Source of the DNA: Epithemia pelagica
Lineage: Eukaryota > Protista > Bacillariophyta
Length of the DNA: 64,000 nucleotides
Assembly: GCA_946965045.2 (NCBI GenBank)
Contig: OX337231.1
Location: 3,658,001 to 3,722,000, forward strand
Direction: 5' to 3'
Shown here: positions 5,166 to 58,939 of the stretch, piece after piece
Layout: each line of letters starts with the position of its first letter
Position numbering within the stretch: position 1 is the first letter of the stretch
Notes under the pieces: generated by a model
What the model saw: the letters and a program-made list of their open reading frames with translations, nothing else
Databases searched by the model: none
What the model was told of the DNA's origin: nothing
Made by a program: the position numbers and the translations under genes

Positions 5166-5286
5166 CAAAATATGGCTAGCCTATTGAGCGAAATTAGCGA
5201 TAGTAAGGCTAGTAAGGCCTCTAAGCTTGAGGCATGAAATAGACACAATTTTTATATTTTCGAGTCACACCCCTACGCGTATTTTG
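5166..5286 (+). repeat. E1 5' LTR (CAAAATA...TATTTTG)
   Basis: Identical to 11339-11459; 7-bp terminal inverted repeat. Confidence 0.95.
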
Positions 5287-5301
5287 GTTTATCAGACCCA
5301 A
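5287..5301 (+). promoter_or_regulatory. E1 primer-binding site GTTTATCAGACCCAA
   Basis: Directly follows the 5' LTR; same 15-mer follows the 5' LTR of E3 and E4; complement TTGGGT-CTGATAA-AC resembles a tRNA anticodon arm. Confidence 0.85.
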
Positions 5302-5338
5302 GAAACTCTGCGATTATGGTAAAAGCTATGGCACAATG

Positions 5339-5590
5339 GCCTGGGAAGGTCGAGAAATATCTGGATCGATGATATAGATCCGCCCAAAGGTCGACTAATG
5401 AAGTCGTACAGCTAGTCTCGTAGAATATCCGGCCTGCAACGGGGTTTGGACCGGACTAGCTAACAGATGTGGTCTGCGAGTGCGCACATCTGGGGCAATG
5501 GCGGACGCGCCGGTCTTGGCCGTTGACAAGACAAAGCCTGCTATGCGGTCATGATTATTTCATAAATGAAACATGTGCCGACGATGCAGC
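5339..5590 (+). ncRNA. Conserved structured leader RNA of E1 (homologous to 52142-52384)
   Basis: Shared motif blocks with E4 and several stems whose sequences differ but still pair (tccgg/ccgga vs tctcg/cgaga; gtcttg/caagac vs catcct/aggatg). Confidence 0.75.
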
Positions 5591-5724
5591 TGTGCACGCT
5601 TTCTACCTTTTGAATCGCCCGAGATGAGTGAAGAACCGGACCGTGTGACTGAAAGAGAATGCTCACTTCCGAGTACAAGAAAGTCCCAATTGATCCGTCT
5701 ACTCGTAGACAAAAGAAGTAAACC

Positions 5725-7203
5725 ATGGCCGCACCTCCAACCGCTCAAGAACTGCTCACTCAGCTCAATGGCTACCTTGAGAATACCCTCCTCATTGGTC
5801 AACAAGAAGTTCGTAACGCTCTCAATGCACAAGGCCTTGTTTCGATTGGCGATTTTGATGGTCTAAAGGAAGACGATATCGCTGAAATTTGCGCTAATGC
5901 CAGGAAACCCGGTGGAACTATTCCTAATCCGGACTATGACGCTGCTAATCCAGTTCCTGGAGTCCCAGTTACCATTACGAACCCTGGAGTATTGGTCGGA
6001 CATGTTTTGGAAAAGCGCTTGAAGATGCTTGGGTACTACGTCCAGTATCTCAACAAGGTCGATCGCGAGTTTAGTGCGGCAACGGCAACATTGGCCCAAA
6101 TCCAAGGACTCTACCGTCTTAAAGAAGCAGACGATGAGTATGATAATGAGATTGAGCTTCCCGAGAAACTCACAAATGTTGAGAACATACGAGTCGTTCT
6201 CGAAGATTTAGACAACTACCTTGAGAGGAAAAGAGGAGTTACTATGATCCCTTTGGCAGCGTATACCCGCTCGATGCCAACTCCTCCTCCGGTTAACTTG
6301 GACCCTGGAATCGGAGCACCAACGTACTTGAGAGAACTAATCAGGCGTGCGCCACTAACTGGAGCAACTGCGGTGGCTGACAAAGAGGCAGTTTGGGATG
6401 TCATACGCCACATAACCCATGATGGCCCTGGATGGGGCTGGGTTCAAGCCTTTAGCCGCAGTCGAGACGGAAGAGGTGCTTATATCGCCTTAAAGAGTCA
6501 TTACTTAGGCGATGCCTTTCAAACAAGACTGAGGGCAAAAGCAGACCAAGTGTTGGAATCGGCCTATTATGACGGGTCAAAACGAAACTACACATATGAG
6601 AGGTACATTGAATCTCTCCAGAGGGCCTTTACGGACCTCGAATCAACTGGCGAGATGGTCAGTAATGAAAGGAAGGTTAGAGTTTTATTGTTGGGTGTAT
6701 CTGATCCAAGGCTTGAAAGCGCGAAGAACACCATACTCGCTACACCTTCACTCAGAGCAAACTTTGAAGTCGCTTCCAACTATTTGGCAGAGATTCTTGA
6801 CAGCAAGGTCTCGTACAGCGCTTCAACAAGGAAGGCCCGAATCTCATCTATCCAGCATAACAAGAATGGAAAAGGTGGAAACAAGAAGAATGGGAGTAAC
6901 CAATCAAACGGTTTTGACCCCAACAAATATTATCCCTTTAGAAAGTGGATAAAACTCACAAAGGAACAACAGCAAATGGTCCGAGAAGCAAGGGACGCTG
7001 TTAACAGCAGCACAAAGAAAAGGTCTGCTGCTGCTGTTCATTGTAAGAACGGTAAGAACAAGAGAAAAGGTGTTGATGGAAGCACGACGACAACTACCGA
7101 TGAGAGTTCAGAGACAACTGGCGACTCCAGTGAGAACGACAAGGAACTCGGTATTGGCGCCATAATGAGCCAGAGAAAGAAAGGCAGGAGAGAAACCGTG
7201 TGA
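5725..7203 (+). CDS. gag: E1 Gag (492 aa), no zinc knuckle, ends in UGA in frame with pol
   Basis: ORF track; Copia gag-like LKSHYLG...YYDG...F motif; homologous to gag of E3 and E4. Confidence 0.92.
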   Translation: MAAPPTAQELLTQLNGYLENTLLIGQQEVRNALNAQGLVSIGDFDGLKEDDIAEICANARKPGGTIPNPDYDAANPVPGVPVTITNPGVLVGHVLEKRLKMLGYYVQYLNKVDREFSAATATLAQIQGLYRLKEADDEYDNEIELPEKLTNVENIRVVLEDLDNYLERKRGVTMIPLAAYTRSMPTPPPVNLDPGIGAPTYLRELIRRAPLTGATAVADKEAVWDVIRHITHDGPGWGWVQAFSRSRDGRGAYIALKSHYLGDAFQTRLRAKADQVLESAYYDGSKRNYTYERYIESLQRAFTDLESTGEMVSNERKVRVLLLGVSDPRLESAKNTILATPSLRANFEVASNYLAEILDSKVSYSASTRKARISSIQHNKNGKGGNKKNGSNQSNGFDPNKYYPFRKWIKLTKEQQQMVREARDAVNSSTKKRSAAAVHCKNGKNKRKGVDGSTTTTTDESSETTGDSSENDKELGIGAIMSQRKKGRRETV

Positions 7204-10200
7204 CGAGATGTCCGCGAGATAGATGCACTCTCCAGGGACATTAGCGTTAGGACGTCTATGTGCGAACTAGACAGTCACGCTGACACCTGTTGTCTTGGTA
7301 AGGATTGCCTCGTTTTATATGAGACAGACAAGGCAGAAGTGAGTGGGTTTTCAACACAGCTCGGGAAACTAAAGGAAACTCCCGTAATCACAGGCGTGTT
7401 GGCATATGATGAACCTGAGACAGGAGAGACTTACCTGTTGTACTTTCATCAAGCGCTCCATCTTCCGATGATGGAGAAGAGCCTATTGAATCCAAATCAG
7501 ATGAGAGAGGCTGGTATCATCGTCAATGATGTACCACTCAAGTTTATCAAACAAGAGCAAAGGACAAGTGAATCTCATTCATTGGTTGTTCCCATTAATG
7601 ACGACAACGAGAGCACCCTGACAATTCCTCTGGAGTTAAAAGGAGTAATCAGTGGCTTCACTGTAAGGAAACCGTCTTGGGAAGAGATAGCGGATGTTGA
7701 CCCTGCGAACAGGATTGAGATGACCAACGACAGTCCAGAATGGGCCCCGAATGACTCGGCTGAAGAAGATGTCGATGAGAGGAGGCTCAGACAGGACGTT
7801 CGTCAAGACATGGTCAGAACGAGAGGTTCGAGGTCGTTGAGTAACAGAATGGCCAAGATGGTGAGAGTAAACTCAAGAACCGTAGCCGAAACGAGCCATA
7901 AGAGAAAGGGGACAATAGATCCCATTGGGTTGGCTTCGAGATGGGGAATCGGTTTGTCAGTTGCGGAAAGGACTTTCAAAGCAACAACGCAACTTGGGGT
8001 AAGAGATTTTTCCCAAGGCGTCGGAAGTAAAAGACTCAAGCATACGGCTTACCAGCTTAAGCATAGAAGGCTTCGGGCAGATGTATACACAGATACTCTG
8101 TTTTCGGATACAAAATCTTTGAGCCAAAATACTTGTGGTCAAATTTTTGCGACCGAGTTTGGTTGGGTTCAATTTTATCCGTTGGAACGCAAGAAGGATG
8201 CTCACACGGCTCTGGAGAAGATCTTTAACGATTACAGAATATTCAATAGTGTTGTCCCAGATAATGCTCCAGAATTGACGAGTGGGAAATTCAAGAAGAC
8301 TGCCCAAAAGTTTGGTTGTCGTATTAAGCCCATAGAAGCTTGGACACCAAACCAAAATCTAGCCGAAGCGAACATCCGTGAACTGAAGAGGGCTTATAGA
8401 AGGGAAATGAGAAGGACAAATGCCCCTGCCGTATTATGGGATCATTGCTTGCAACTGGTAGCTGAGAGACGATCCCATACAGCTTCTGCGACTGAACCGT
8501 TTGATGAAGGCCCACCTATAAAAATGTTGACCGGTGATACACCAGACATATCCCATCTAGTTGAACACAGATGGTATGACCCGGTCTGGTATTCTAATCC
8601 CGGGTTTGAGAACAGGGAACTCGGAAGGTGGCTAGGACCAAGTAAATCGGTTGGTCAAGCAATGAGTTCGAAAATACTGACACGAAAAGGCAAGATTGTC
8701 CATCGTACTTCCGTGTGGCCCCTGTCGGTTGAAAAGTCCCATGATCCGTCGTTTACTGCACAACGTGAACAGTTTGATACTGACCTAAAGGAAGCTCTGG
8801 GTAACCGATTCGAAGGTCTTGACCCAGAGGAAGGAGATGATCCCGCAGAAGAAGGAAATGATACTCCTTTCTTCGAGGCATATGAAGACGATGAGCAAGA
8901 AGACACAAGAGTTCCAGAGGCCGACGATTACAAGGTGGATGCATACGACAAATTAATCTCGGCCAAGGTGATGCTCCCTTTAGGGGACTCAAAGAGACCA
9001 GGTCAAGTTATACGTCGGAAAAGAGATGCAGACGGTAATCCAATTGGTCGGTCATCTTCAAATCCGTATCTGGATACGTCGTTGTACGAAGTAGAGTTCC
9101 ATGATGGCCACGTCGAGTCTTATGCGGCAAACCTGATTGCCGAGAACATTTACGAGCAGTTAGACGATGAGGGAAACAAATACAAACTCATCGATCAGAT
9201 CATGGATCACCGAAAAGATGCAACTGCCATACCAATCTCAGAGGGTACGTTCTTTCATAATGGGAGAGAACATAAGAAAAAGACGACGAGGGGTTGGCAT
9301 CTTTGTATATTGTGGAAAGATGGTTCCACGTCGTGGGAGATGCTCAAGGACCTGAAGGAATCGTATCCTTTAGAAGTAGCCGAATATGCAGTGGCTAACT
9401 TGCTCGACAAAGAACCGGCTTTCAATTGGTGGGTCGATTTCACTCTCAAGAGGCGTGCAAGACTAATCAAGGCCATCTCAAGCACAAGGTACATGCGAAA
9501 ATGGCAAAAGTACGGTATTGAGCTTCCTAAGACCGTAGAACGGGCGTTGCAAATCGATAAAGAAACAGGAACAGACTTCTGGGCTAAAGCCCTTCAACTC
9601 GAAATGTCAAAGATCTTTCCTGCAGTCAAGATTTTGGAAGAAGGCGCGCTGCACCCACCTGGCCATCAAGTCATCCCATGTCATATTGTGTTTGACATAA
9701 AGATGGATTTTACCAGGAAAGCGAGGTATGTAGCAGGGGGACACCGTACCCAAGAGCCAGAAACGCCTACCTATGCCAGTGTAGTCAGCAGAGAGAGCGT
9801 GAGAATCGGATTCTTACTTGCAGCACTGAATGGAATCAATATCCTTGCGGCTGATATCGCTGGAGCATATTTGAACGCTCCTTGCCACGAAAGAGTGTGC
9901 ACCAAATGTGGCTTAGAATTTGGAAAAGAAAATGAAGGGAGGTACGCGATAATCACTAAGGCACTATATGGCCTTAAGACGAGTGCCTTCGCATGGAGAG
10001 AACACCTTTCCACGACTTTGCAAGAGTCGTTAGGGTTTCGACCGTGCCGAGCAGATCCCGATGTATATCTTCGGGCCTCTACAAAAGATGATGGATCGAA
10101 GTACTATGAACTGGTGTTCATCTATATAGATGACGTCCTTGTCATCTCTCAGAAGGCACAAGAGATCTTGAATATGATCGACCAACATTATTTATTGAAA

Positions 10201-11202
10201 CCGGATTCGATCGGAGTACCCAAGATCTATCTGGGGAACCAAGTAGAAACTTTCGACATTGACAATGACGTGTCTAAAAGATGTTGGGCGCTAAGTTCAA
10301 AGCGATACGCAACAGAAGCCATACGGAATGTCAAGGTTTGGATGGATGAAAGAAACTTGAGTCTTAAGACTCGAGCCCCAAGCGTGCTGCCAACGGGATA
10401 CCGTCCAGAATTGGATACGAGCCCATATTGCAATGCTGATTGGCAATCGTTTTTCCAACAGCAGATTGGTGTCCTCAGATGGTTGGTCGAGCTGGGAAGG
10501 ATCGACATTACTGCGGAGGTTTCAATGTTGGCGGCTTTCCTAGCAGGAGCAAGAGAAGGTCATGTTCATGCGATGCTTCATGTCTTCGCTTATCTGAACT
10601 TGCATGACCGTTCGAGACTGGTATTAGACCCTTCATATATTCAACACGGAGAAGAGTTGACAGCTGATTGGGCAGGTTTTTATCCAGACGCCAAAGAAGA
10701 CATTCCGGCAGACGCTCCAGAACCATTGGGTAATCCAGTCCAGATGACTGTCTTCGTCGACTCTGATCATGCTGGAGATTTGATCACCAGACGTTCAAGA
10801 ACGGGAGTTTTAATCTATCTGAATCGAGCTCCGGTAACTTGGTACAGTAAGAAACAGACCAGCGTCGAAACATCAACATTTGGGTCAGAATTCATGGCTC
10901 TCAAAGTGGGCATTGAAATGGTAAAAGGACTTCGATACAAGTTAAGGATGATGGGCGTACCTCTGGATGGACATGCGCATATACGGGTTGATAACATGTC
11001 TGTGGTACTGAATACGTCGGTCCCTGAATCAACACTGAAAAAGAAGTCAAATTCAATCGCATATCATTTTGTTCGTGAGAATGTTGCGTCGGGCATGTGT
11101 CGTGTTGCTTTTGAACCGTCGAAGACTAACCTTGCTGACATTCTTACCAAGATCCAAACAGGTACAGAGAGAACACGGTTAGCATCAATGATTCTATATT
11201 AG
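7204..11202 (+). CDS. pol: E1 Pol (PR-INT-RT-RNase H); open from the codon after the gag UGA, first ATG at 7258
   Basis: PR ELDSHADTCC; INT VYTDTLF / VVPDNAPEL / NLAEANIRE; RT KARYVAGGH, ADIAGAYLNA, KALYGLK, IYIDD; RH VDSDHAGD, STFGSEF, NLADILTK. Confidence 0.97.
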   Translation, partial: RDVREIDALSRDISVRTSMCELDSHADTCCLGKDCLVLYETDKAEVSGFSTQLGKLKETPVITGVLAYDEPETGETYLLYFHQALHLPMMEKSLLNPNQMREAGIIVNDVPLKFIKQEQRTSESHSLVVPINDDNESTLTIPLELKGVISGFTVRKPSWEEIADVDPANRIEMTNDSPEWAPNDSAEEDVDERRLRQDVRQDMVRTRGSRSLSNRMAKMVRVNSRTVAETSHKRKGTIDPIGLASRWGIGLSVAERTFKATTQLGVRDFSQGVGSKRLKHTAYQLKHRRLRADVYTDTLFSDTKSLSQNTCGQIFATEFGWVQFYPLERKKDAHTALEKIFNDYRIFNSVVPDNAPELTSGKFKKTAQKFGCRIKPIEAWTPNQNLAEANIRELKRAYRREMRRTNAPAVLWDHCLQLVAERRSHTASATEPFDEGPPIKMLTGDTPDISHLVEHRWYDPVWYSNPGFENRELGRWLGPSKSVGQAMSSKILTRKGKIVHRTSVWPLSVEKSHDPSFTAQREQFDTDLKEALGNRFEGLDPEEGDDPAEEGNDTPFFEAYEDDEQEDTRVPEADDYKVDAYDKLISAKVMLPLGDSKRPGQVIRRKRDADGNPIGRSSSNPYLDTSLYEVEFHDGHVESYAANLIAENIYEQLDDEGNKYKLIDQIMDHRKDATAIPISEGTFFHNGREHKKKTTRGWHLCILWKDGSTSWEMLKDLKESYPLEVAEYAVANLLDKEPAFNWWVDFTLKRRARLIKAISSTRYMRKWQKYGIELPKTVERALQIDKETGTDFWAKALQLEMSKIFPAVKILEEGALHPPGHQVIPCHIVFDIKMDFTRKARYVAGGHRTQEPETPTYASVVSRESVRIGFLLAALNGINILAADIAGAYLNAPCHERVCTKCGLEFGKENEGRYAIITKALYGLKTSAFAWREHLSTTLQESLGFRPCRADPDVYLRASTKDDGSKYYELVFIYIDDVLVISQKAQEILNMIDQHYLLKPDSIGVPKIYLGNQVETFDIDNDVSKRCWALSSKRYATEAIRNVKVWMDERNLSLKTRAPSVLPTGYRPELDTSPYCNADWQSFFQQQIGVLRWLVELGRIDITAEVSMLAAFLAGAREGHVHAMLHVFAYLNLHDRSRLVLDPSYIQHGEELTADWAGFYPDAKEDIPADAPEPLGNPVQMTVFVDSDHAGDLITRRSRTGVLIYLNRAPVTWYSKKQTSVETSTFGSEFMALKVGIEMVKGLRYKLRMMGVPLDGHAHIRVDNMSVVLNTSVPESTLKKKSNSIAYHFVRENVASGMCRVAFEPSKTNLADILTKIQTGTERTRLASMILY

Positions 11203-11204
11203 TG

Positions 11205-11274
11205 CGTTTCCCGCCAACCTGTGTTGGGACTGGGTACGTCCTGCACCTAAAAGATGAAAGGGCTTTAAGCAGGT
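11205..11274 (+). promoter_or_regulatory. Conserved two-hairpin RNA motif after E1 pol stop
   Basis: GTTTCC...GGTAC-TCCTGC...AAGCAGGT shared with E3 (45632-45693, -) and E4 (57952-58015). Confidence 0.65.
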
Positions 11275-11338
11275 CTAGATGGAACGAGAGAAGATTGGCA
11301 CAGCTACTTCATTACGAGACGAAGAACTGTGAGGGGAC

Positions 11339-11459
11339 CAAAATATGGCTAGCCTATTGAGCGAAATTAGCGATAGTAAGGCTAGTAAGGCCTCTAAGCT
11401 TGAGGCATGAAATAGACACAATTTTTATATTTTCGAGTCACACCCCTACGCGTATTTTG
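11339..11459 (+). repeat. E1 3' LTR
   Basis: Identical to 5166-5286; preceded by purine tract gaggggac. Confidence 0.95.
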
Positions 11460-51414: not shown

Positions 51415-52141
51415 GATGATGATGAGGAGAAGACGTCCAATTGAAGTCACACGGTAAACTATGTACCTGGAATCAATGGATTTCAAAACTCTCTTCCGTA
51501 GTTCTTGTCTGTTTGTTTCACCTTGTGGGAGCCAACAGGGAGGTTTTGCAGGGAGCTTTCTGACACGAGAAATGCTTCCGCCAAAAATAAATTGACTATG
51601 ACTAGTGGTGGTCGTACTGCTTCCGAGAGTGATCAGCTCTCGTGGTTGCTCCTTGGGTAAGAGTGGACTGTTACCCACGAGCCCTATTCAGAACACAATT
51701 CCACTGATGTTTTGTGTATTTTCCACGGGTGGATGCTGAATGGACCAGATTTCTGGTTTTGCTGTTGGTCTCCGATCCTTGTACCTTGTAATTCCCAACG
51801 TTATTGGGTCTGATAAACTGTTCAAATCCGTAAGACAATGGTGTAGGGCTAAGGGAGAAGGTCAAGGTAAAAAAAAGGTAAAGGAAAATTATAAGGATCC
51901 GGGAGGGTTGACACCCGAGGATTTTAGTACGCCAGTAGGCGGTAAACGGTAGACTTTTGACAGTACCATTGGGATTTATCAAGAAACGCGACTGATGTTT
52001 AGCGAAATTTGGGCGAGTAGCTAGCCCATGAGGGCAGCATAGCTAAAGACTCACAAATACAATTTTTACCCTGATACCATGCTCGTAATTTGGTTTATCA
52101 GACCCAATTGACCTAATCACTGAGATGCTACTCCCACCATA

Positions 52142-52384
52142 GCCTGGGAAGGTCGCGAAATATCTAGATCATTCGCTTTGAGAATGACTGCCTAAGGTTG
52201 GATACCTGTACTCCCTTTTCTCTGCTAATATCTCGCCTGCAACGGGGCTCGAGATTGAGAAATGTGATGTGTGGTCGGCTTGTGCGCACGCATCGGGCAA
52301 TGGCGGACACGCCGTTCATCCTACCGTTGAAGGATGCCAGCTATACGGACACGTTCATTACTTAATGACGTGCGCCGTCCTAGC
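52142..52384 (+). ncRNA. Conserved structured leader RNA of E4 (homologous to 5339-5590)
   Basis: Same ordered motif blocks and covarying stems as in E1. Confidence 0.75.
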
Positions 52385-52518
52385 GAACATGCAAGCTCTC
52401 AACTCCGATTCTACTTTACTGCTCGCTCGCAGGTAGAAACGAAACAATGAGGTGAAGATACTCTGTATCGTCACTTTACTCGAAAGTCCGGAAGAGTTCC
52501 AGCTAACAAGTAACAACC

Positions 52519-53946
52519 ATGGCCGCTGTCTCTCCTCTCCAACTTCTAAACGTCTACATGGATGTGGTCCTACAGATCACCGATCCTGCAGTATGCAATG
52601 CCTTGAATGCCCAAGGATTAACATCTGTTTATGACTTTGACGCTTTGAGCGAAGATGATGTCGCCAAAATTTGCTCAAACGCCCGAAAGCCAGGAGGATT
52701 GATTGTCAATCCAGACCCTGCTGGAGTCCCAGCAATGATTGCCAATCCAGGAGTCCTAATTGGACACCTAGTTGAGAAGAAGCTCAAGATGTTGCGAAAC
52801 TACATCGTCCACATTGGCAAAATCAATCGTACCTTTGCCGCTGTACCTCCAACGCTGAATGATCTCACCATTCTCTACCGATTCAAGGAAGCTGAAGATG
52901 GACATGACAACGACATTGAACTTCCAGGCAAGCTGACATCCGTGGAAAACATCTGAGTGGTTTTAGAAGATCTTGATAACTATCTCGAATGCAAGCGGGG
53001 CGTGCCTGGCATTCCCTTGGCTGCCTATACCAGGGAAAACCCCACTGTTCCGAATGAAGCTGATGATCCTTACGGTTTTGGAAATCCAACGATCTTGGCA
53101 GAAATGATACGTCGAGCTCCGCATGAAGGACCAACTGCTGCTACCGATATGATAGCTGTTTGGGATGTGATTCGTCACATTACTCATGACGGACCTGGCT
53201 GGGGTTGGGTTATGCCTTTCAGTCGGACCAGGAATGGCCGAGCAGCATATTTGGCCCTAAAAGGGCATTACCTTGGTGACGCCTTTCAAGCTCGCTTGAG
53301 AGCAAAGGCAGATCAATTACTCGAGAGTACGTACTACGATGGCTCAAAAAGAAACTTCTCTTATGAGCACTTCATCGAAACCTTGCAACGCGCATTCACC
53401 GACTTGGAGTCGACTGGAGAAATTGTAAGCGAAGAACGAAAGGTTCGCCTCCTAATGACAGGAGTGAATGACTCAAGATTGGAAAGCGCTAAGAACCAAA
53501 TCTTAGCCACTCCGACACTCCGTGCTACCTTCGAGAATGCCTCCAATTTCTTGGCTGAAGTACTTGACAGTGAAGTCTCGTACAGTGCGGGAAGTTGTAA
53601 ACAGGCCCGCATCTCCTCAATCAACGCAACGCCAAGCAAAGGAAGAGGAAAGAATAATAAAAATAAAAAAAACAACGACGATAAGAAAGAAGTGACGGAC
53701 CGATACTATAAGCCTAATGAGTGGGCTAAGTTAACCGGCGAGGAACGACAACGTGTTCGCGATGCGCGCGAGAAACGAGACAAGAGACGAGGGGTCGGTG
53801 CTGTTTCCTCAGGCAAGAAAAGGAACAACCCCAACAACGATGAGACCCCTGATGTATCAGAGGAGTCATCCTCAGAAGAGAATAACAACGATACAAAAGG
53901 TATCGGCGCTGTTATGTCTCAAAGGAAGAAGAATCGTAACGTCTGA
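52519..53946 (+). pseudogene. gag: E4 gag interrupted by premature TGA at 52954-52956
   Basis: ENI*VVLEDLD aligns to E1 ENIRVVLEDLD (CGA to TGA); frame otherwise continuous. Confidence 0.9.
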
Positions 53947-56900
53947 CATCAATTGATGAGCGTACATTCTCACATGAATGAAATAACAGTACCGTTAGTG
54001 TACTGCGAATTGGACAGTCATGCCGACACATGCTGTCTCGGAAACGGTTGTTACGTCCTATACCAGACAGACACGGCCGACGTGAGTGGCTTTGTAGAAA
54101 GCCTTGGAAAGATCAAGGAAGCCGCAGTAGTCACTGGGGTTTTGGCATACGACGATGAAGAAAGCGGAAATACATACTTGCTCTATTTCCATCAAGCTCT
54201 ACATCTACCCCAACTGAAGAACCGTTGTCTCTTGAATCCCAACCAAATGAGAGAAGCGGGAGTCGAAGTACATGATATCCCTCTCAAGTATCTCAAACCT
54301 GAGCAACGAGACCATCGCTCCCACAGTCTAGTCGTAAGAGACGATGAAGAGAACGAGATGAAAATCCCTTTGGATCTCGTGGGTGTTTTGAGCCAGTTCA
54401 AGACACGGAAACCAACAAGTCAAGAGATGGAATCAATCGATCCAGCATTCAGGATCAATATGACCAATGATCGTCCGGAGTGGCAGCCGAATGACTCGAC
54501 AATAGATGTCGACGAAAGGACGCTCCGACAATCCATATCCAATGACATGCCCAAACCTGAACGCGAGAGGCAAGTGAATATTCGATTGACAAAATCAATG
54601 CGAATCAACAACCGCAGGATTTCCATTGCTGACATCTCCCATAGGAGAAAGGGGACTGTCAATGCAGCTGACATAGCGAAACGGTGGAACATTGGCCTAC
54701 CAAGCGCAGAACGTACTTTCAGTCAGACAACCCAATTGGGAGTACGAGATTTCTCTGGAGATTCAGAAGGAGGACGTAGATTGAAGCACACGGCATATCG
54801 GTTGCGTCATAGACGCTTGCGAGCCGACGTGTACACCGACACACTCTTCTCGGAGACAAAATCCCTTGACCAACACACATGTGGGCAAATCTTTGCGACG
54901 GATTTTGGCTGGGTACACTTCATACCCATGCGGTCCAAGAGTGAGGCGCCAGAGACATTGGCACCTGTTTTTGATGAGTATGGGATATTTAACCACATTG
55001 TCCCCGATAATGCTCCAGAATTGACATCACAATCCTTCCGTTGTGTCGCACACAAATACGGATGTCGGATCAAACCGGTTGAGGCATGGACGCCCAATCA
55101 GAACCTTGCCGAAGCCAATATACGGGAGCTCAAACGACTCCACCGAAGAGAAATGGGAAGAAGCGATGCTCCGGCAGTCTTATGGGATCACTGCCTAATG
55201 CTCATGGCTGAAAGACGCTCGCATACGGCATTCGCACAAGATGGCAGTGGCCCACCAATTCAACAACTGACCGGTGACACACCGGACATATCGCATATCG
55301 TCGAACATAAATGGTATGACTGGGTTTGGTGCGCCAATCCAGGAATAGAAGGACGTCAATTGGGCCATTGGTTGGGTCCAAGTCGTTCTGTTGGACAGGC
55401 AATGTGTGGAAAAATCCTGACAGAGAAAGGAAAGATAATTCACCGCACCTCAATATGGCCTGGCAAGAAAGAAACACTTTTGGATGATGCCTTCAAGGAA
55501 AGGCAGGAAGCCTACACGGCGCAACTCAAAGAGGCGCTCGGAGTCCGTATGGCCGGGATTTCTCTAGCTGAGAACGAACATGACGAGTTCGCAGATGATA
55601 CTCCTAGCTATGAGGCGTATGAAGACGACGAGCAAACAGACGTGCGTGTACCCGAGGTTGACGATTATGCACCAGATGCATACGACAAGTTAATCTCCGC
55701 AAAAGTCATGCTACCCTTAGGTGATATTCATCGAAAGGGGACTGTCCGAAAGCGCAAGAGAGATGGAGATGGCAAGGTGATTGGTAGGGCATCCAATAAT
55801 CCCTACCTTGACACCACTCTCTATGAAGTCGAGTTCGATGATGGGTTGGTACAAACGTATGCCGCTAATATCATAGCGGAAAACATCTTTGAACAACTGG
55901 ATGATGAGGGTAACCTCTATCGAATAATTGACGAAATTATCGATCACAAGAGCGACAATACAGCGATCTCAATCGCTGATGGAGAATTCCAACTCAATGG
56001 TCGAACGCATAAGAAAAGGACAACGAAAGGATGGTTCTTGTGTGTTCAGTGGAAAGATGGCTCCACTAGCTGGGAAGCCGTTAAGGATATGAAAGAATCG
56101 TATCCGATTGAGGTGGCAGAATACGCCACCGCGAATCACATCGACAAAGAGCCAGCCTTTGCATGGTGGGTGCCGTTCACACTTCGTCCTCGACGAGCAA
56201 GACTTATAAAGGCAGCCACAAGCTCACGATATATGCGCAAGTGGCAAAAATATGGCATCGAAATACCGAAGACGGTAGAGCGAGCGCTCGAAATAGACCG
56301 TGAGACTGGCACTGACTATTGGCGTAAGGCTCTGCAATTGGAGATCTCGAAGATATTTCCTGCCGTGAAAATCCTCGAAGAAGGTGTTGGTGCACCAGTC
56401 GGGTATCAAACAATCCCTTGTCACATCGTCTTCGATGTCAAGATGGATTTCACCCGCAAGGCACGCTACGTCGCTGGTGGGCACAAAACTGAAGATCCTG
56501 AGACTCCCACATATGCAAGCGTGGTGAGCCGGGAAAGTGTGCGGATTGGATTCCTACTGGCCGCACTCAATGATTTGGAAGTTCTCACCGCCGATATTGC
56601 TGGTGCATATTTAAACGCACCTTGTCACGAAAAGGTCTGCACTGTCTGTGGCCTTGAATTCGGCGCTGAAAACAAAGGACGAATAGCCCTCATACAAAAG
56701 GCACTGTACGGGCTCAAAACGAGTGCATATGCATGGCGTGAGCACTTGTCTACGACACTGCACACAGCCCTTGGCTATCGATCCTGTCGTGCTGATCCCG
56801 ACGTATATTTAAGACCATCACAAAAGCCAAGTGGAGAAAAATACTATGAAATGATCTTTGTGTATACGGATGATGTGTTGATCGTGCCACACAAAGCAAT

Positions 56901-57942
56901 GGAAACCTTGACCATGTTGGACCAACATTATCTTTTAAAGCCGGACTCAATTGGCATTCCCAAGATTTATTTGGGAAATCAAGTCCAAACCTTCGATATT
57001 AATGGCGATGCCACTCAACAATGTTGGGCACTCAGCTCAGACAAGTATGTCAAAGCAGCGATCAAGAATGTCACTACTTGGCTCGAAGAACGGGATCGCA
57101 AGCTTAAGACACGCGCTCCAAGTGTTTTACCCTCTGGCTATCGACCAGAGATGGATACAAGTCCATATTGTGATCCGGAACTGTTGAATTTTTATCAACA
57201 ACAAATTGGTGTATTGAGATGGATCGTTGAACTTGGAAGAATCGACATTACTGCTGAAGTATCGATGTTAGCCGCCTTCCTTGCCGGACCACGCGAAGGA
57301 CATATTGAAGCAATGTTGCACTTATTTGCTTATCTCAATCTACATGATCGCTCTCGACTGGTGATGGACCCTTCCTATGTTGAGCATGGGGAGGAACCCA
57401 CACATGATTGGAGTGGCTTCTATCCAGAAGCAGTGGAAGAAATTCCCCCTGATATGCCAGAACCTCTGGGAAACGCTGTGCAAATCACAGCTTTTGTGGA
57501 CTCAGACCATGCCGGTGATTTATTGACTAGAAGGTCACGAACTGGAGTCCTTATATACGTTAACCGTGCACCCGTTGCATGGTACAGCAAGAAGCAAACG
57601 AGTGTAGAAACTTCTACGTTTGGATCGGAATTCATGGCACTCAAGGTTGGTGTGGAGATGCTAAAAGGACTACGATACAAGCTGAGAATGATGGGAGTGC
57701 CACTTGATGGTCATGCCCATGTCCAGGTAGACAACATGTCAGTGGTTTACAATAGTTCCTTGCCCGAATCAACCTTGCGGAAGAAATCCAATTCAGTGGC
57801 GTATCACTATGTTCGTGAAAATGTGGCCAATGGAACATGCAAAGTGGCCTTTGAGCCATCCACAACAAACTTGGCCGATCTACTGACAAAGATCCAAACC
57901 GGCCCTGAACGAACTCGTTTGGCAAAGATGATTTTATTTTGA
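53947..57942 (+). CDS. pol: E4 Pol (PR-INT-RT-RH), in frame with gag
   Basis: ELDSHADTCC, IVPDNAPEL, KARYVAGGH, VYTDD, VDSDHAGD; collinear with E1 pol. Confidence 0.95.
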   Translation, partial: HQLMSVHSHMNEITVPLVYCELDSHADTCCLGNGCYVLYQTDTADVSGFVESLGKIKEAAVVTGVLAYDDEESGNTYLLYFHQALHLPQLKNRCLLNPNQMREAGVEVHDIPLKYLKPEQRDHRSHSLVVRDDEENEMKIPLDLVGVLSQFKTRKPTSQEMESIDPAFRINMTNDRPEWQPNDSTIDVDERTLRQSISNDMPKPERERQVNIRLTKSMRINNRRISIADISHRRKGTVNAADIAKRWNIGLPSAERTFSQTTQLGVRDFSGDSEGGRRLKHTAYRLRHRRLRADVYTDTLFSETKSLDQHTCGQIFATDFGWVHFIPMRSKSEAPETLAPVFDEYGIFNHIVPDNAPELTSQSFRCVAHKYGCRIKPVEAWTPNQNLAEANIRELKRLHRREMGRSDAPAVLWDHCLMLMAERRSHTAFAQDGSGPPIQQLTGDTPDISHIVEHKWYDWVWCANPGIEGRQLGHWLGPSRSVGQAMCGKILTEKGKIIHRTSIWPGKKETLLDDAFKERQEAYTAQLKEALGVRMAGISLAENEHDEFADDTPSYEAYEDDEQTDVRVPEVDDYAPDAYDKLISAKVMLPLGDIHRKGTVRKRKRDGDGKVIGRASNNPYLDTTLYEVEFDDGLVQTYAANIIAENIFEQLDDEGNLYRIIDEIIDHKSDNTAISIADGEFQLNGRTHKKRTTKGWFLCVQWKDGSTSWEAVKDMKESYPIEVAEYATANHIDKEPAFAWWVPFTLRPRRARLIKAATSSRYMRKWQKYGIEIPKTVERALEIDRETGTDYWRKALQLEISKIFPAVKILEEGVGAPVGYQTIPCHIVFDVKMDFTRKARYVAGGHKTEDPETPTYASVVSRESVRIGFLLAALNDLEVLTADIAGAYLNAPCHEKVCTVCGLEFGAENKGRIALIQKALYGLKTSAYAWREHLSTTLHTALGYRSCRADPDVYLRPSQKPSGEKYYEMIFVYTDDVLIVPHKAMETLTMLDQHYLLKPDSIGIPKIYLGNQVQTFDINGDATQQCWALSSDKYVKAAIKNVTTWLEERDRKLKTRAPSVLPSGYRPEMDTSPYCDPELLNFYQQQIGVLRWIVELGRIDITAEVSMLAAFLAGPREGHIEAMLHLFAYLNLHDRSRLVMDPSYVEHGEEPTHDWSGFYPEAVEEIPPDMPEPLGNAVQITAFVDSDHAGDLLTRRSRTGVLIYVNRAPVAWYSKKQTSVETSTFGSEFMALKVGVEMLKGLRYKLRMMGVPLDGHAHVQVDNMSVVYNSSLPESTLRKKSNSVAYHYVRENVANGTCKVAFEPSTTNLADLLTKIQTGPERTRLAKMILF

Positions 57943-58939
57943 CTGGAGTAACGTTTCCCGCCTTCAGGGTCTGGGTACGTCCTGCCTCCAAAAAGGGAGC
58001 TCTGTAAAAGCAGGTAATAAAGATGCAGAGAGATGAAGAACAAGAAATGAATGAGAATGAAAGAAAAGGGGGCACGATATGACTATATAATGACATAGCT
58101 ATCGTGAGGGGACCAAGAAACGCGACTGATGTTTAGCGAAATTTGGGCGAGTAGCTAGCCCATGAGGGCAGCATAGCTAAAGACTCACTAATACGATTTT
58201 TACCCTGATACCATGCTCGTAATTTGTTATGAAAGCCTTTCTGAGACTATAACTCACTTGGTGGTGTTCTGATTTTTGATATGCGTGCCAAGTCCCAAGG
58301 CTAGAGGCAAATCTTTGTTCTGGGTTATTTCGAGCCCACGTCGCCATGCCCATTTCTTCACATCAAACCGTCTAACTTGTCAGTCTGCTTCGTCGTGTTG
58401 GTAGCCAAGGCATAGCAAATGACGCCAAAAGTAGCGAAGCATTAATGAGTGGTGTTCGTTAGACCCCGCAAGATCTCGTTATGCAAAGCTCACTCAGTTT
58501 GGCCCCCAACAGGCCTCTTGTGAAGTTCATTCGTGTACTGTTGTGGACTATCCGATGTTACGATTCGTGAATACTGAATAACTATCCCGTCAGTCGCACA
58601 GATGTGTGTTATCATGAATCGACCAGAACCCCAGAACATCAAATGATCATGACAGCATGACCTTGGGTCATGGGCGACGAACAGGTTGCCGTGCAACTGG
58701 CAGGGACACGAATTGGGAGGCTCACCCGTTCCGCGAAACCTGAAAATTCGAAATTGGATTTCGATTTTCGATGAGCCTCTCCATCACATCTATGTCCCCC
58801 CTCATTGTACTAGCCGCAATCGTGCTTGTATTCCTCTTCCCAACTGCATTCCAACAACCCGCCACTAATAATGGTAACCCCGTTGGTCGACATTCGTTCC
58901 TCCTACCATCAGTCCATAAAGTTGGAGAACAAGTCAACT

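Follow-up and report, generated by a model that had tools for sequence, protein, structure and literature searches.

What does a long, non-coding leader do in front of the gag gene of a retrotransposon? This question is raised by E1 (5166-11459) and E4 (about 51980-58226), two long terminal repeat (LTR) elements on the plus strand of a 64,000-nt stretch of the diatom Epithemia pelagica (assembly GCA_946965045.2, contig OX337231.1, positions 3,658,001 to 3,722,000). We call this whole stretch the window, and the coordinates of E1 and E4 refer to it. Between the primer-binding site (PBS) and gag, both elements carry a module of about 260 nt (5338-5608 in E1 and 52141..52405 in E4, plus strand). 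A first-pass annotation, made from the letters of the window, had described it as a conserved multi-helix RNA and had listed six functions without choosing one. The sequence blocks that it named are all present where it placed them, including CAACGG (5437-5442 and 52240-52245) and CCGTTG (5520-5525 and 52324-52329), and the comparisons below bear out a conserved multi-helix RNA with real covariation on the sense strand, starting 36 nt past the PBS. They also argue that two of its loops pair, and they lead us to lean towards a role in dimerisation and packaging of the genomic RNA.

Covariation supports a folded leader RNA

The module is a repeated feature of this genome. DNA searches with both leaders hit more than 70 places with 70-100% identity, representing about 15 subfamilies, and a covariance model (R1), built from 17 representatives and 189 positions, gave 78 matches across the 60.5 Mb of the genome (E<=0.01). 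Within the window, R1 matched the E1 and E4 copies only, the latter with 184 bits at 52157-52342. A 19-nt block, GGGCAATGGCGGAC.CGCC, likewise occurs solely in E1 and E4 within the window, with a chance expectation of 0.01. The third element, E3 on the minus strand, has the PBS (51804-51820, 2 mismatches) and lacks the module, as annotated at first. With regard to conservation, measured in 20-nt bins over 15 representatives, the module reaches 0.7-0.92 versus mostly 0.6-0.77 for gag (first 500 nt); elsewhere in the leader, conservation is far lower (0.45-0.6). The module ends about 120 nt upstream of the gag AUG. The 78 genome copies, together with a conservation above that of gag, suggest that the module is under purifying selection, and we count this in favour of the function proposed below.

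The fold itself is carried by the behaviour of paired positions. In a model-based alignment of 39 distinct copies, assessed over the 31 pairs of the tool's own consensus, 97.8% of the cells were paired, compared with 21-58% when the partners were slid by 1-3 columns. Double changes occurred in 14 of the 31 pairs versus 0-3 in the slid controls, and the covariation score was 0.368 versus 0.02-0.09. Moreover, G.U cells far exceeded A.C cells (135 versus 8), from which it follows that the sense strand is the folding strand. On these comparisons between copies, a structured RNA is well supported. H4 and the H5 arm described below lay outside the tool's consensus, so that they were aligned without reference to structure.

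The helices of the module

The helices are given in E1 coordinates on the plus strand. The module opens with H1 (5338-5342 with 5347-5351), a GGCCU/AGGUC hairpin with a GNGA tetraloop (here GGGA) that shows covariation across lineages; an alternative AGGU/AUCU pairing returned by RNAalifold was ruled out on this ground. The linker GAGAAAUAUCU (5352..5362) contains AAUAUCU, which is invariant in the genome family and also stands after every foreign H1 unit. H2 (GGAUC/GAUCC, 5363-5367 with 5377-5381) exchanges GC and AU at its closing pair (22 versus 15 sequences); the E4 family has UCAUUC/GAAUGA instead, and some subfamilies have an inner hairpin inserted. H3 (GCCC/GGGC, 5382-5385 with 5493-5496) closes the multiloop that holds H4, the H5 arm and H6. 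All of its cells (100%) are paired, and H3 is compatible with pairing but unproven by covariation, because its changes are one-sided only (C to U, giving U.G).

Inside the multiloop, H4 (5390..5409) is a variable hairpin drawn from individual folds: nearly all of the 15 representatives fold it alone (one is without the segment), with stems such as GUCGAC/GUCG.AC, GAGAC/GUCUC, AAGAU/AUCUU and AGGU/ACCU. The H5 domain (5410..5461) consists of an outer stem (5410-5417/5454-5461), an internal loop with a second AAUAUC, the inner stems H5b (5428-5431/5447-5450) and H5c (5433-5435/5442-5444), and the apical loop L1 (GCAACG, 5436-5441). Every one of the 15 representatives folds this stem-loop arm alone with the GCAACG region at its apex, while the outer stem varies (CUAGUC/GACUAG, CUAACC/GGUUAG, UUUCUC/GAGAAA, GUUCAUC/GAUGAAU, UCCUCUA/UAGAGGA). 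The alignment fold of the arm has double changes in 6 of 12 pairs, and H5c shows a CG to UA exchange. H6 (5464-5471 with 5485-5492) is an 8-bp stem, CAGAUGUG/CACAUCUG, which includes a bulge region with invariant GGUC as well as a small inner stem; 99% of its cells are paired and 5 of its 8 pairs change on both sides.

Downstream of the multiloop, H7 (U-GGCG/CGCC-G, 5499-5503 with 5508-5512) has a covarying stem and a GACG tetraloop (5504-5507). It is followed by H8 (GUCUUG/CAAGAC, 5513-5518 with 5527-5532), whose apical loop L2 is GCCGUUGA (5519-5526) and in which all 3 counted pairs change two-sidedly. In E4, L1 is at 52240-52245, H7 at 52301-52314 (loop GACA) and L2 at 52324-52329. The 3' domain (5538..5608) comprises a long terminal hairpin (about 5538-5592) and the conserved block AUGCAGCUGUGCACGCUUUCUACCU. 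The hairpin folds in the E1 copy and in E4-family representatives with different closing pairs (CUGC/GCAG, GCUA/UAGC, GCC/GGC), and single-sequence folds of other E1-family representatives are inconsistent; the details of this domain are less certain than those of H1-H8. RNAalifold also proposed that CAAUGGC at the 5' end pairs at long range with L2. This was rejected, because the E4 family has CCAUGGC and the foreign leader L092 is without the motif.

Six stems had been proposed from E1 and E4 by the first-pass annotation, and five of them hold: H2, H5 (agctagtc/gactagct in E1 versus tttctc/gagaaa in E4), H6 (agatgtg/cacatct versus gatgtgtg/cacgcatc), H8 (catcct/aggatg in E4) and the long terminal hairpin. 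The sixth, tccgg/ccgga in E1, did not survive. The UCCGG/CCGGA helix re-uses two bases of the next helix, and the covariation in the family (UCCA/UGGA, GUUCA/UGAAC, UCUG/CAGA) speaks against it; family members back instead the pairing of UCCG (5428-5431) with UGGA (5447-5450).

Related leaders in other organisms

Relatives were sought by a Gag search, which returned environmental contigs with 33-53% identity whose upstream DNA was then examined, and by a metagenome scan for the pattern of PBS, gap and H1 core, which added six further real leaders and one false positive (L104). In L092, the covariance model detected the full module (34.8 bits, E=3e-8); more distant leaders retain parts only, namely PBS, H1 unit, H7 and H8. 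The PBS is the same in L092, L099, L101 and L109-L112.

The foreign H1 unit is a CCU-GNGA-AGG hairpin, then 3-6 nt, then AAUAUCU, and it occurs as 1-4 tandem units. There are two units in L105 (215-269) and L108, three in L109 (211-350) and four in L107 (734-846, minus strand), and those of L105, L107 and L109 come right after the PBS. Among 21 units taken from many lineages, the three pairs next to the loop do not vary and the loop itself is GGGA, GAGA or GCGA throughout, while the fourth pair (GC6 CG4 AU3 UA2 UG2) and the fifth (GU8 AU6 GC5 UA1) covary. The H7 stem also varies (GGCG/CGCC, GACG/CGUC, GGUG/CACC), and its loop is GACG in 12 of 13 lineage-A sequences, including eight foreign ones (L091, L092, L098, L099, L101, L109, L110 and L112). 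In the distant leaders, the H8 hairpin stands directly after H7.

Scans of viral and prokaryotic collections for the PBS or the PBS plus H1 gave matches at chance level, apart from one mislabelled contig, L161 (JAYSWT010000184.1, 1517 nt, 'MAG: bacterium'). It has the same PBS, two H1 units and the gag start of this clade, and is probably eukaryotic contamination of a prokaryotic bin.

Probable pairing between the two apical loops

The loop-loop pairing had been proposed from two invariant hexamers. L1 and L2 are invariant within the genome, and therefore only foreign leaders can test it. E1 and E4 have CAACGG/CCGUUG as L1/L2. The foreign leaders have CGCAAC/GUUGCG (L092), CGCAAC/GUUGUG with one G.U (L109), UUACAACU/AGUUGUAA (L098), CACAAUC/GAUUGUG (L099), UUCGAC/GUCGAA (L110), ACCGU/ACGGU (L112) and UGCC/GGCA (L101). 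The core, CAA/UUG, is constant, and compensating double changes are seen at four of the positions flanking it; for instance, C-G of E1 becomes U-A in L099, and G-C at the next position becomes U-A and then C-G. The idea drawn from the hexamers is thus now backed by compensating changes in leaders of other organisms.

Both motifs lie in apical loops in the single-sequence folds of E1, E4 and L099, the hairpins of L099 having been predicted independently; in the minimum-energy fold of L092, part of L1 is buried in a stem. For single lineages, the P values against shuffles were 0.006 for L099 (7-nt match), 0.01 for L098, 0.066 for L092 and 0.12 for E1. When five lineages were taken together, the cognate loop pairs gave a higher total complementarity than all but 2 of 120 permutations. 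In a test of 8 lineages without pre-selection of L1, which searched the whole upstream region of every lineage for the longest complement to each L2, the diagonal lay above 99.6% of the permutations (p=0.0043). From these comparisons it seems probable that L1 and L2 really pair. Pairing within one molecule and pairing between two are equally allowed by the data.

A possible dimerisation and packaging domain

Packaging and dimer signals of retroelements sit between the PBS and gag. By analogy, we give slightly better than even chances to the reading that the module is a cis-acting dimerisation and packaging (Psi-like) domain in the genomic RNA of one Ty1/copia clade, because its position, its covarying complementary apical loops and its conserved GACG tetraloop match signals of retroelements. 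In such a mechanism, L1 of one RNA would pair with L2 of a second copy and the reverse, and the two kissing contacts would start dimerisation. The GACG hairpin would give an additional loop contact, as in gamma- and alpharetroviruses, and the repeated units of hairpin and AAUAUCU would bind the basic C-terminal part of Gag, selecting the RNA for the particle. The tandem repetition of H1 and AAUAUCU fits a repeated protein-binding site. Alternatively, an intramolecular kiss between L1 and L2 might compact the monomer.

The leader may also be compared with that of human immunodeficiency virus type 1 (HIV-1). Like its dimer initiation site and Psi, our module would begin dimerisation with a kiss between loops of the leader, and its G-rich tetraloops are possible sites for the capsid protein. 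The HIV-1 dimer initiation site is one self-complementary (palindromic) loop. Here, on the other hand, there are two different complementary loops, and Gag is without a zinc knuckle detectable by Pfam.

One of the two closest analogues is the 5' domain of Ty1. Transposition of Ty1 depends on two hairpins whose 7-nt apical motifs are complementary, and compensatory mutants rescue it; two intermolecular kisses have been modelled to start dimerisation and packaging (PMC5454406). Our module resembles these TIPIRT hairpins SL1a and SL3a (PMC5454406, PMC6844567) in belonging to the same superfamily, in being a 5'-terminal cis domain of the genomic RNA and in having two separate hairpins with complementary apical motifs of 6-8 nt; the compensation is mutational in Ty1 and evolutionary here. 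They differ in that most of the Ty1 domain falls within the GAG coding region and has a pseudoknot as its framework; in our elements, the framework is a multiloop, and it stands in a dedicated non-coding leader of about 420 nt. Moreover, Ty1 has neither the GACG hairpin nor the repeated unit of GNGA hairpin and AAUAUCU. The likeness to Ty1 is one of description, and homology in sequence is not expected given the divergence.

With regard to H7, GACG tetraloops have a packaging role in alpha- and gammaretroviruses, and one centres the dimer site of Maedi-Visna virus (PMC516450). The hairpin shares with these retroviral ones (PMC516450) a short, G+C-rich, covarying stem, the tetraloop itself and the place in the leader between PBS and gag. 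Unlike them, it is carried by a copia retrotransposon with a sister lineage that has GAAU. Convergence with retroviruses is likely, rather than shared descent.

Several points weigh against a dimerisation and packaging domain. The folding energy is unremarkable (z = -1.98 for E1 and -0.02 for E4), and therefore the case rests on comparison between copies. The three public runs in which the sequence occurs consist of genomic DNA contigs and thus contain no meaningful starts, ends or splice joints. The invariance of L1 and L2 within the genome means that the covariation of the kiss comes entirely from five to eight foreign contigs. Among these, the complementarity of L110 (6 nt), L112 (5 nt) and L101 (4 nt) is weak and, taken alone, at chance level, and the foreign L2, defined as the loop of the first hairpin after H7, was called by eye, with automatic calls differing in four cases. 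Unlike the gammaretroviral double hairpin, each leader has a single GACG hairpin, whose neighbour H8 bears the variable L2, and in a second lineage (L102, L105, L108) GAAU replaces GACG in the same hairpin. Finally, the module is not universal, because it is absent from E3 and from the Gag relatives L095-097 and L111; the upstream DNA of L100 was too short to judge.

Complementarity between leader and 3' end was also noticed. In E1, a 23-nt stretch just upstream of the polypurine tract (11298-11320) is complementary piecewise (8, 9 and 8 nt) to 5588-5595, 5396-5404 and 5415-5422, and in E4 the H4/H5 leader segment 52211-52221 is complementary to purine-rich stretches of the 3' untranslated region (UTR) at 57991-57999 and 58062-58070. 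These might be cyclisation contacts like those of Ty1. As a general 5'-3' cyclisation the idea was rejected, since the duplex energies of the whole leader and 3' UTR regions equal those of shuffles (z = -0.19 and 0.12).

Other explanations for the module

The best of the rival explanations, which we consider unlikely, is that the module is a platform for translation control, in which the structured leader would bring ribosomes to the gag AUG through internal entry or through shunting. Every leader examined has 9-17 upstream AUGs and no conserved upstream reading frame, so that gag would be out of reach of simple scanning on the full-length RNA and internal entry or shunting becomes plausible. 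Retroviral and pararetroviral leaders with a similar load of upstream AUGs use these routes. The gag AUG stands in a strong, conserved ACCAUGGC context, with a stable and conserved multi-helix block 125-190 nt upstream of it. However, the leader is least conserved (0.45-0.6) just where it adjoins the gag AUG. Loops that covary and stay complementary, together with a GACG tetraloop, typify dimer and packaging signals rather than known entry sites, and a shorter transcript could supply Gag instead. A conserved upstream open reading frame (ORF) was tried and rejected: most subfamilies have an AUG at the 5' edge of H1, but frames, lengths and peptides differ because of indels. A role in translation would be compatible with one in packaging, as the 5' domain of Ty1 combines both (PMC5454406).

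Slightly less probable still is a scaffold for the initiation of reverse transcription, where the module would bind or position the primer, thought to be the anticodon-arm half of tRNA-Ile, for example via AAUAUC. The PBS lies 36 nt before the module, does not differ between lineages and resembles the complement of the Ile anticodon arm. AAUAUC is invariant and repeated; two Ile codons, AUA and AUC, lie within it, and it has UAUC in common with the core of the PBS. Extra contacts with primer tRNAs are made by the leaders of Ty1 and HIV-1. On the other hand, E3 and L111 manage with this PBS in the absence of the module, UAUC spans just 4 nt, and the anticodon arm would already be occupied by the PBS. 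No complement of H1 was found among the tRNA 3' ends of the genome. H1 as a second PBS was accordingly discarded: TGGCCTGGGAAGGTCG would match a tRNA 3' end of which the genome has no example, and the LTR boundary fixes the PBS at 5285-5301. A search for the arm in a primer tRNA-Ile(AAU) gene found no exact match, and there was no tRNA within the loci examined.

A combined form is considerably more doubtful. In it, the unit of GNGA hairpin and AAUAUC would be a docking site for the anticodon loop of tRNA-Ile, and the leader would capture and concentrate its primer tRNA through pairing like that of codon and anticodon, in the manner of a T-box specifier, while L1, L2 and GACG link two genomes. 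If true, the module would be a combined machine for primer recruitment and dimerisation, and it might help to direct the cleavage from which the half-tRNA primer arises.

It is very improbable that the module is catalytic, as a self-cleaving or primer-maturing ribozyme, or that it senses a ligand, as a riboswitch. The module is a compact multi-helix RNA with a GNRA-type tetraloop, a likely loop-loop contact and invariant unpaired nucleotides (GGUC bulge, AAUAUC, GCAAUG), all of which could suit such an RNA. It nevertheless matches none of 4227 Rfam models, which include all known self-cleaving classes, even at E<=10; all that stays invariant in distant lineages is a core of two short hairpins, unlike a catalytic core, and elements with the same PBS lack it. 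Thus, of the functions first listed, ribozyme and riboswitch are favoured by nothing that we found. Just as improbable is a DNA-level regulatory region (a downstream promoter or enhancer): the LTRs are only 113-121 bp, the invariant blocks could be protein-binding sites, and transcriptional elements lie downstream of the start site in Ty1 and in copia of Drosophila, but compensating double changes in at least seven helices and the excess of G.U over A.C (135 to 8) are the signature of a sense single-stranded RNA fold and would not arise on duplex DNA.

Novelty and significance

The earlier remark that no known family is recognisable agrees with our Rfam scan. Rfam 15 gave 0 covariance-model matches at gathering score in the whole window, and at E<=10 the region 5290-5730 gave only a chance match to SNORD31, outside the module, with 13.7 bits against a cut-off of 40. 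To our knowledge, the selection, pairing and packaging of RNA by LTR retrotransposons are very little understood outside yeast, with Ty1 and Ty3 as almost the sole models. We found no published description of the module in the literature, and the paper on diatom copia elements (PMC2806351) contains no discussion of PBS or leader. The principle of paired loops for dimerisation and packaging is already established for Ty1 and retroviruses, and the module itself is a new example.

As a dimerisation and packaging domain, the module would be a second example from the Ty1/copia superfamily, and one far from Ty1 in phylogeny, where compensating changes have preserved two complementary apical loops. 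This suggests that a double-kiss mechanism is old or recurrent in the superfamily. Moreover, the invariant GACG tetraloop hairpin, otherwise retroviral, suggests convergence with retroviruses on one small RNA device. With the covariance model and the signatures of H1 and H7, this clade can be annotated in genomes of algae and in marine metagenomes. The model and signatures also define a minimal cis region for marked mini-elements that measure retrotransposition.

The two elements and minor observations

Both elements are of the Ty1/copia type, with an RVT_2 reverse transcriptase in the pol ORF. Their LTRs are very short (121 bp in E1 and 113 bp in E4) with CAA...TTG termini; the 5' LTR of E1 (5166..5286, plus strand, CAAAATA...TATTTTG) was aligned to the 3' copy at 11339-11459. 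To call the LTRs of E1 and E4 unrelated, as was done at first, is an overstatement, for they are 61% identical compared with 49.5% (maximum 55%) for shuffles. The PBS, TGGTTTATCAGACCCAA, is directly 3' of the 5' LTR in both elements and identical between them (plus strand, 5285..5301 in E1, abutting the LTR end, and 52091-52107 in E4). Then come the non-coding leader of about 420 nt (5302-5724 in E1) and the gag ORF, whose start context is ACCATGGC in both and whose product has a basic C-terminal region and no zinc knuckle by Pfam.

The divergence of the two elements is moderate, with protein identities of 71% for Pol and 61% for Gag and DNA identities of 61% for the LTR, 67.5% for the module, 61% for gag and 67% for pol. 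The identity of the module is that of pol DNA, and its distinctive trait is the combination of invariant blocks and compensating stems, not its overall identity. E4 is a decaying copy, because its gag is interrupted by an in-frame stop (52954-52956) and its leader departs from the consensus at positions otherwise invariant in relatives (52139-52141, 52309 and 52323), with AUA for AUG and GACA for the GACG tetraloop. Further changes in the E4 leader relative to its relatives are a loop that begins with A rather than G and GCCU rather than GCCC.

Some copies elsewhere in the genome are rearranged. At L033:1-1800 (genome contig 18, about 2636272-2638100), a 1075-bp direct duplication of LTR and leader has produced two tandem modules. 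L057:1384-1592 was rejected as a divergent copy; it is an internal-deletion derivative in which the H2 loop is fused to H5b, with the 5' strand of H3, H4, L1 and most of the H5 arm lost. On genome contig 16, two pairs of weak model matches (37-46 bits), each spaced by about 800 bp, lie at about 962066-963028 and 975593-976506, and have the appearance of a module in repeated, strongly diverged or partial form. Within the window, E3 (minus strand) and E4 (plus strand) are arranged head to head at 51804-51980, with their 5' LTRs about 12 bp apart.

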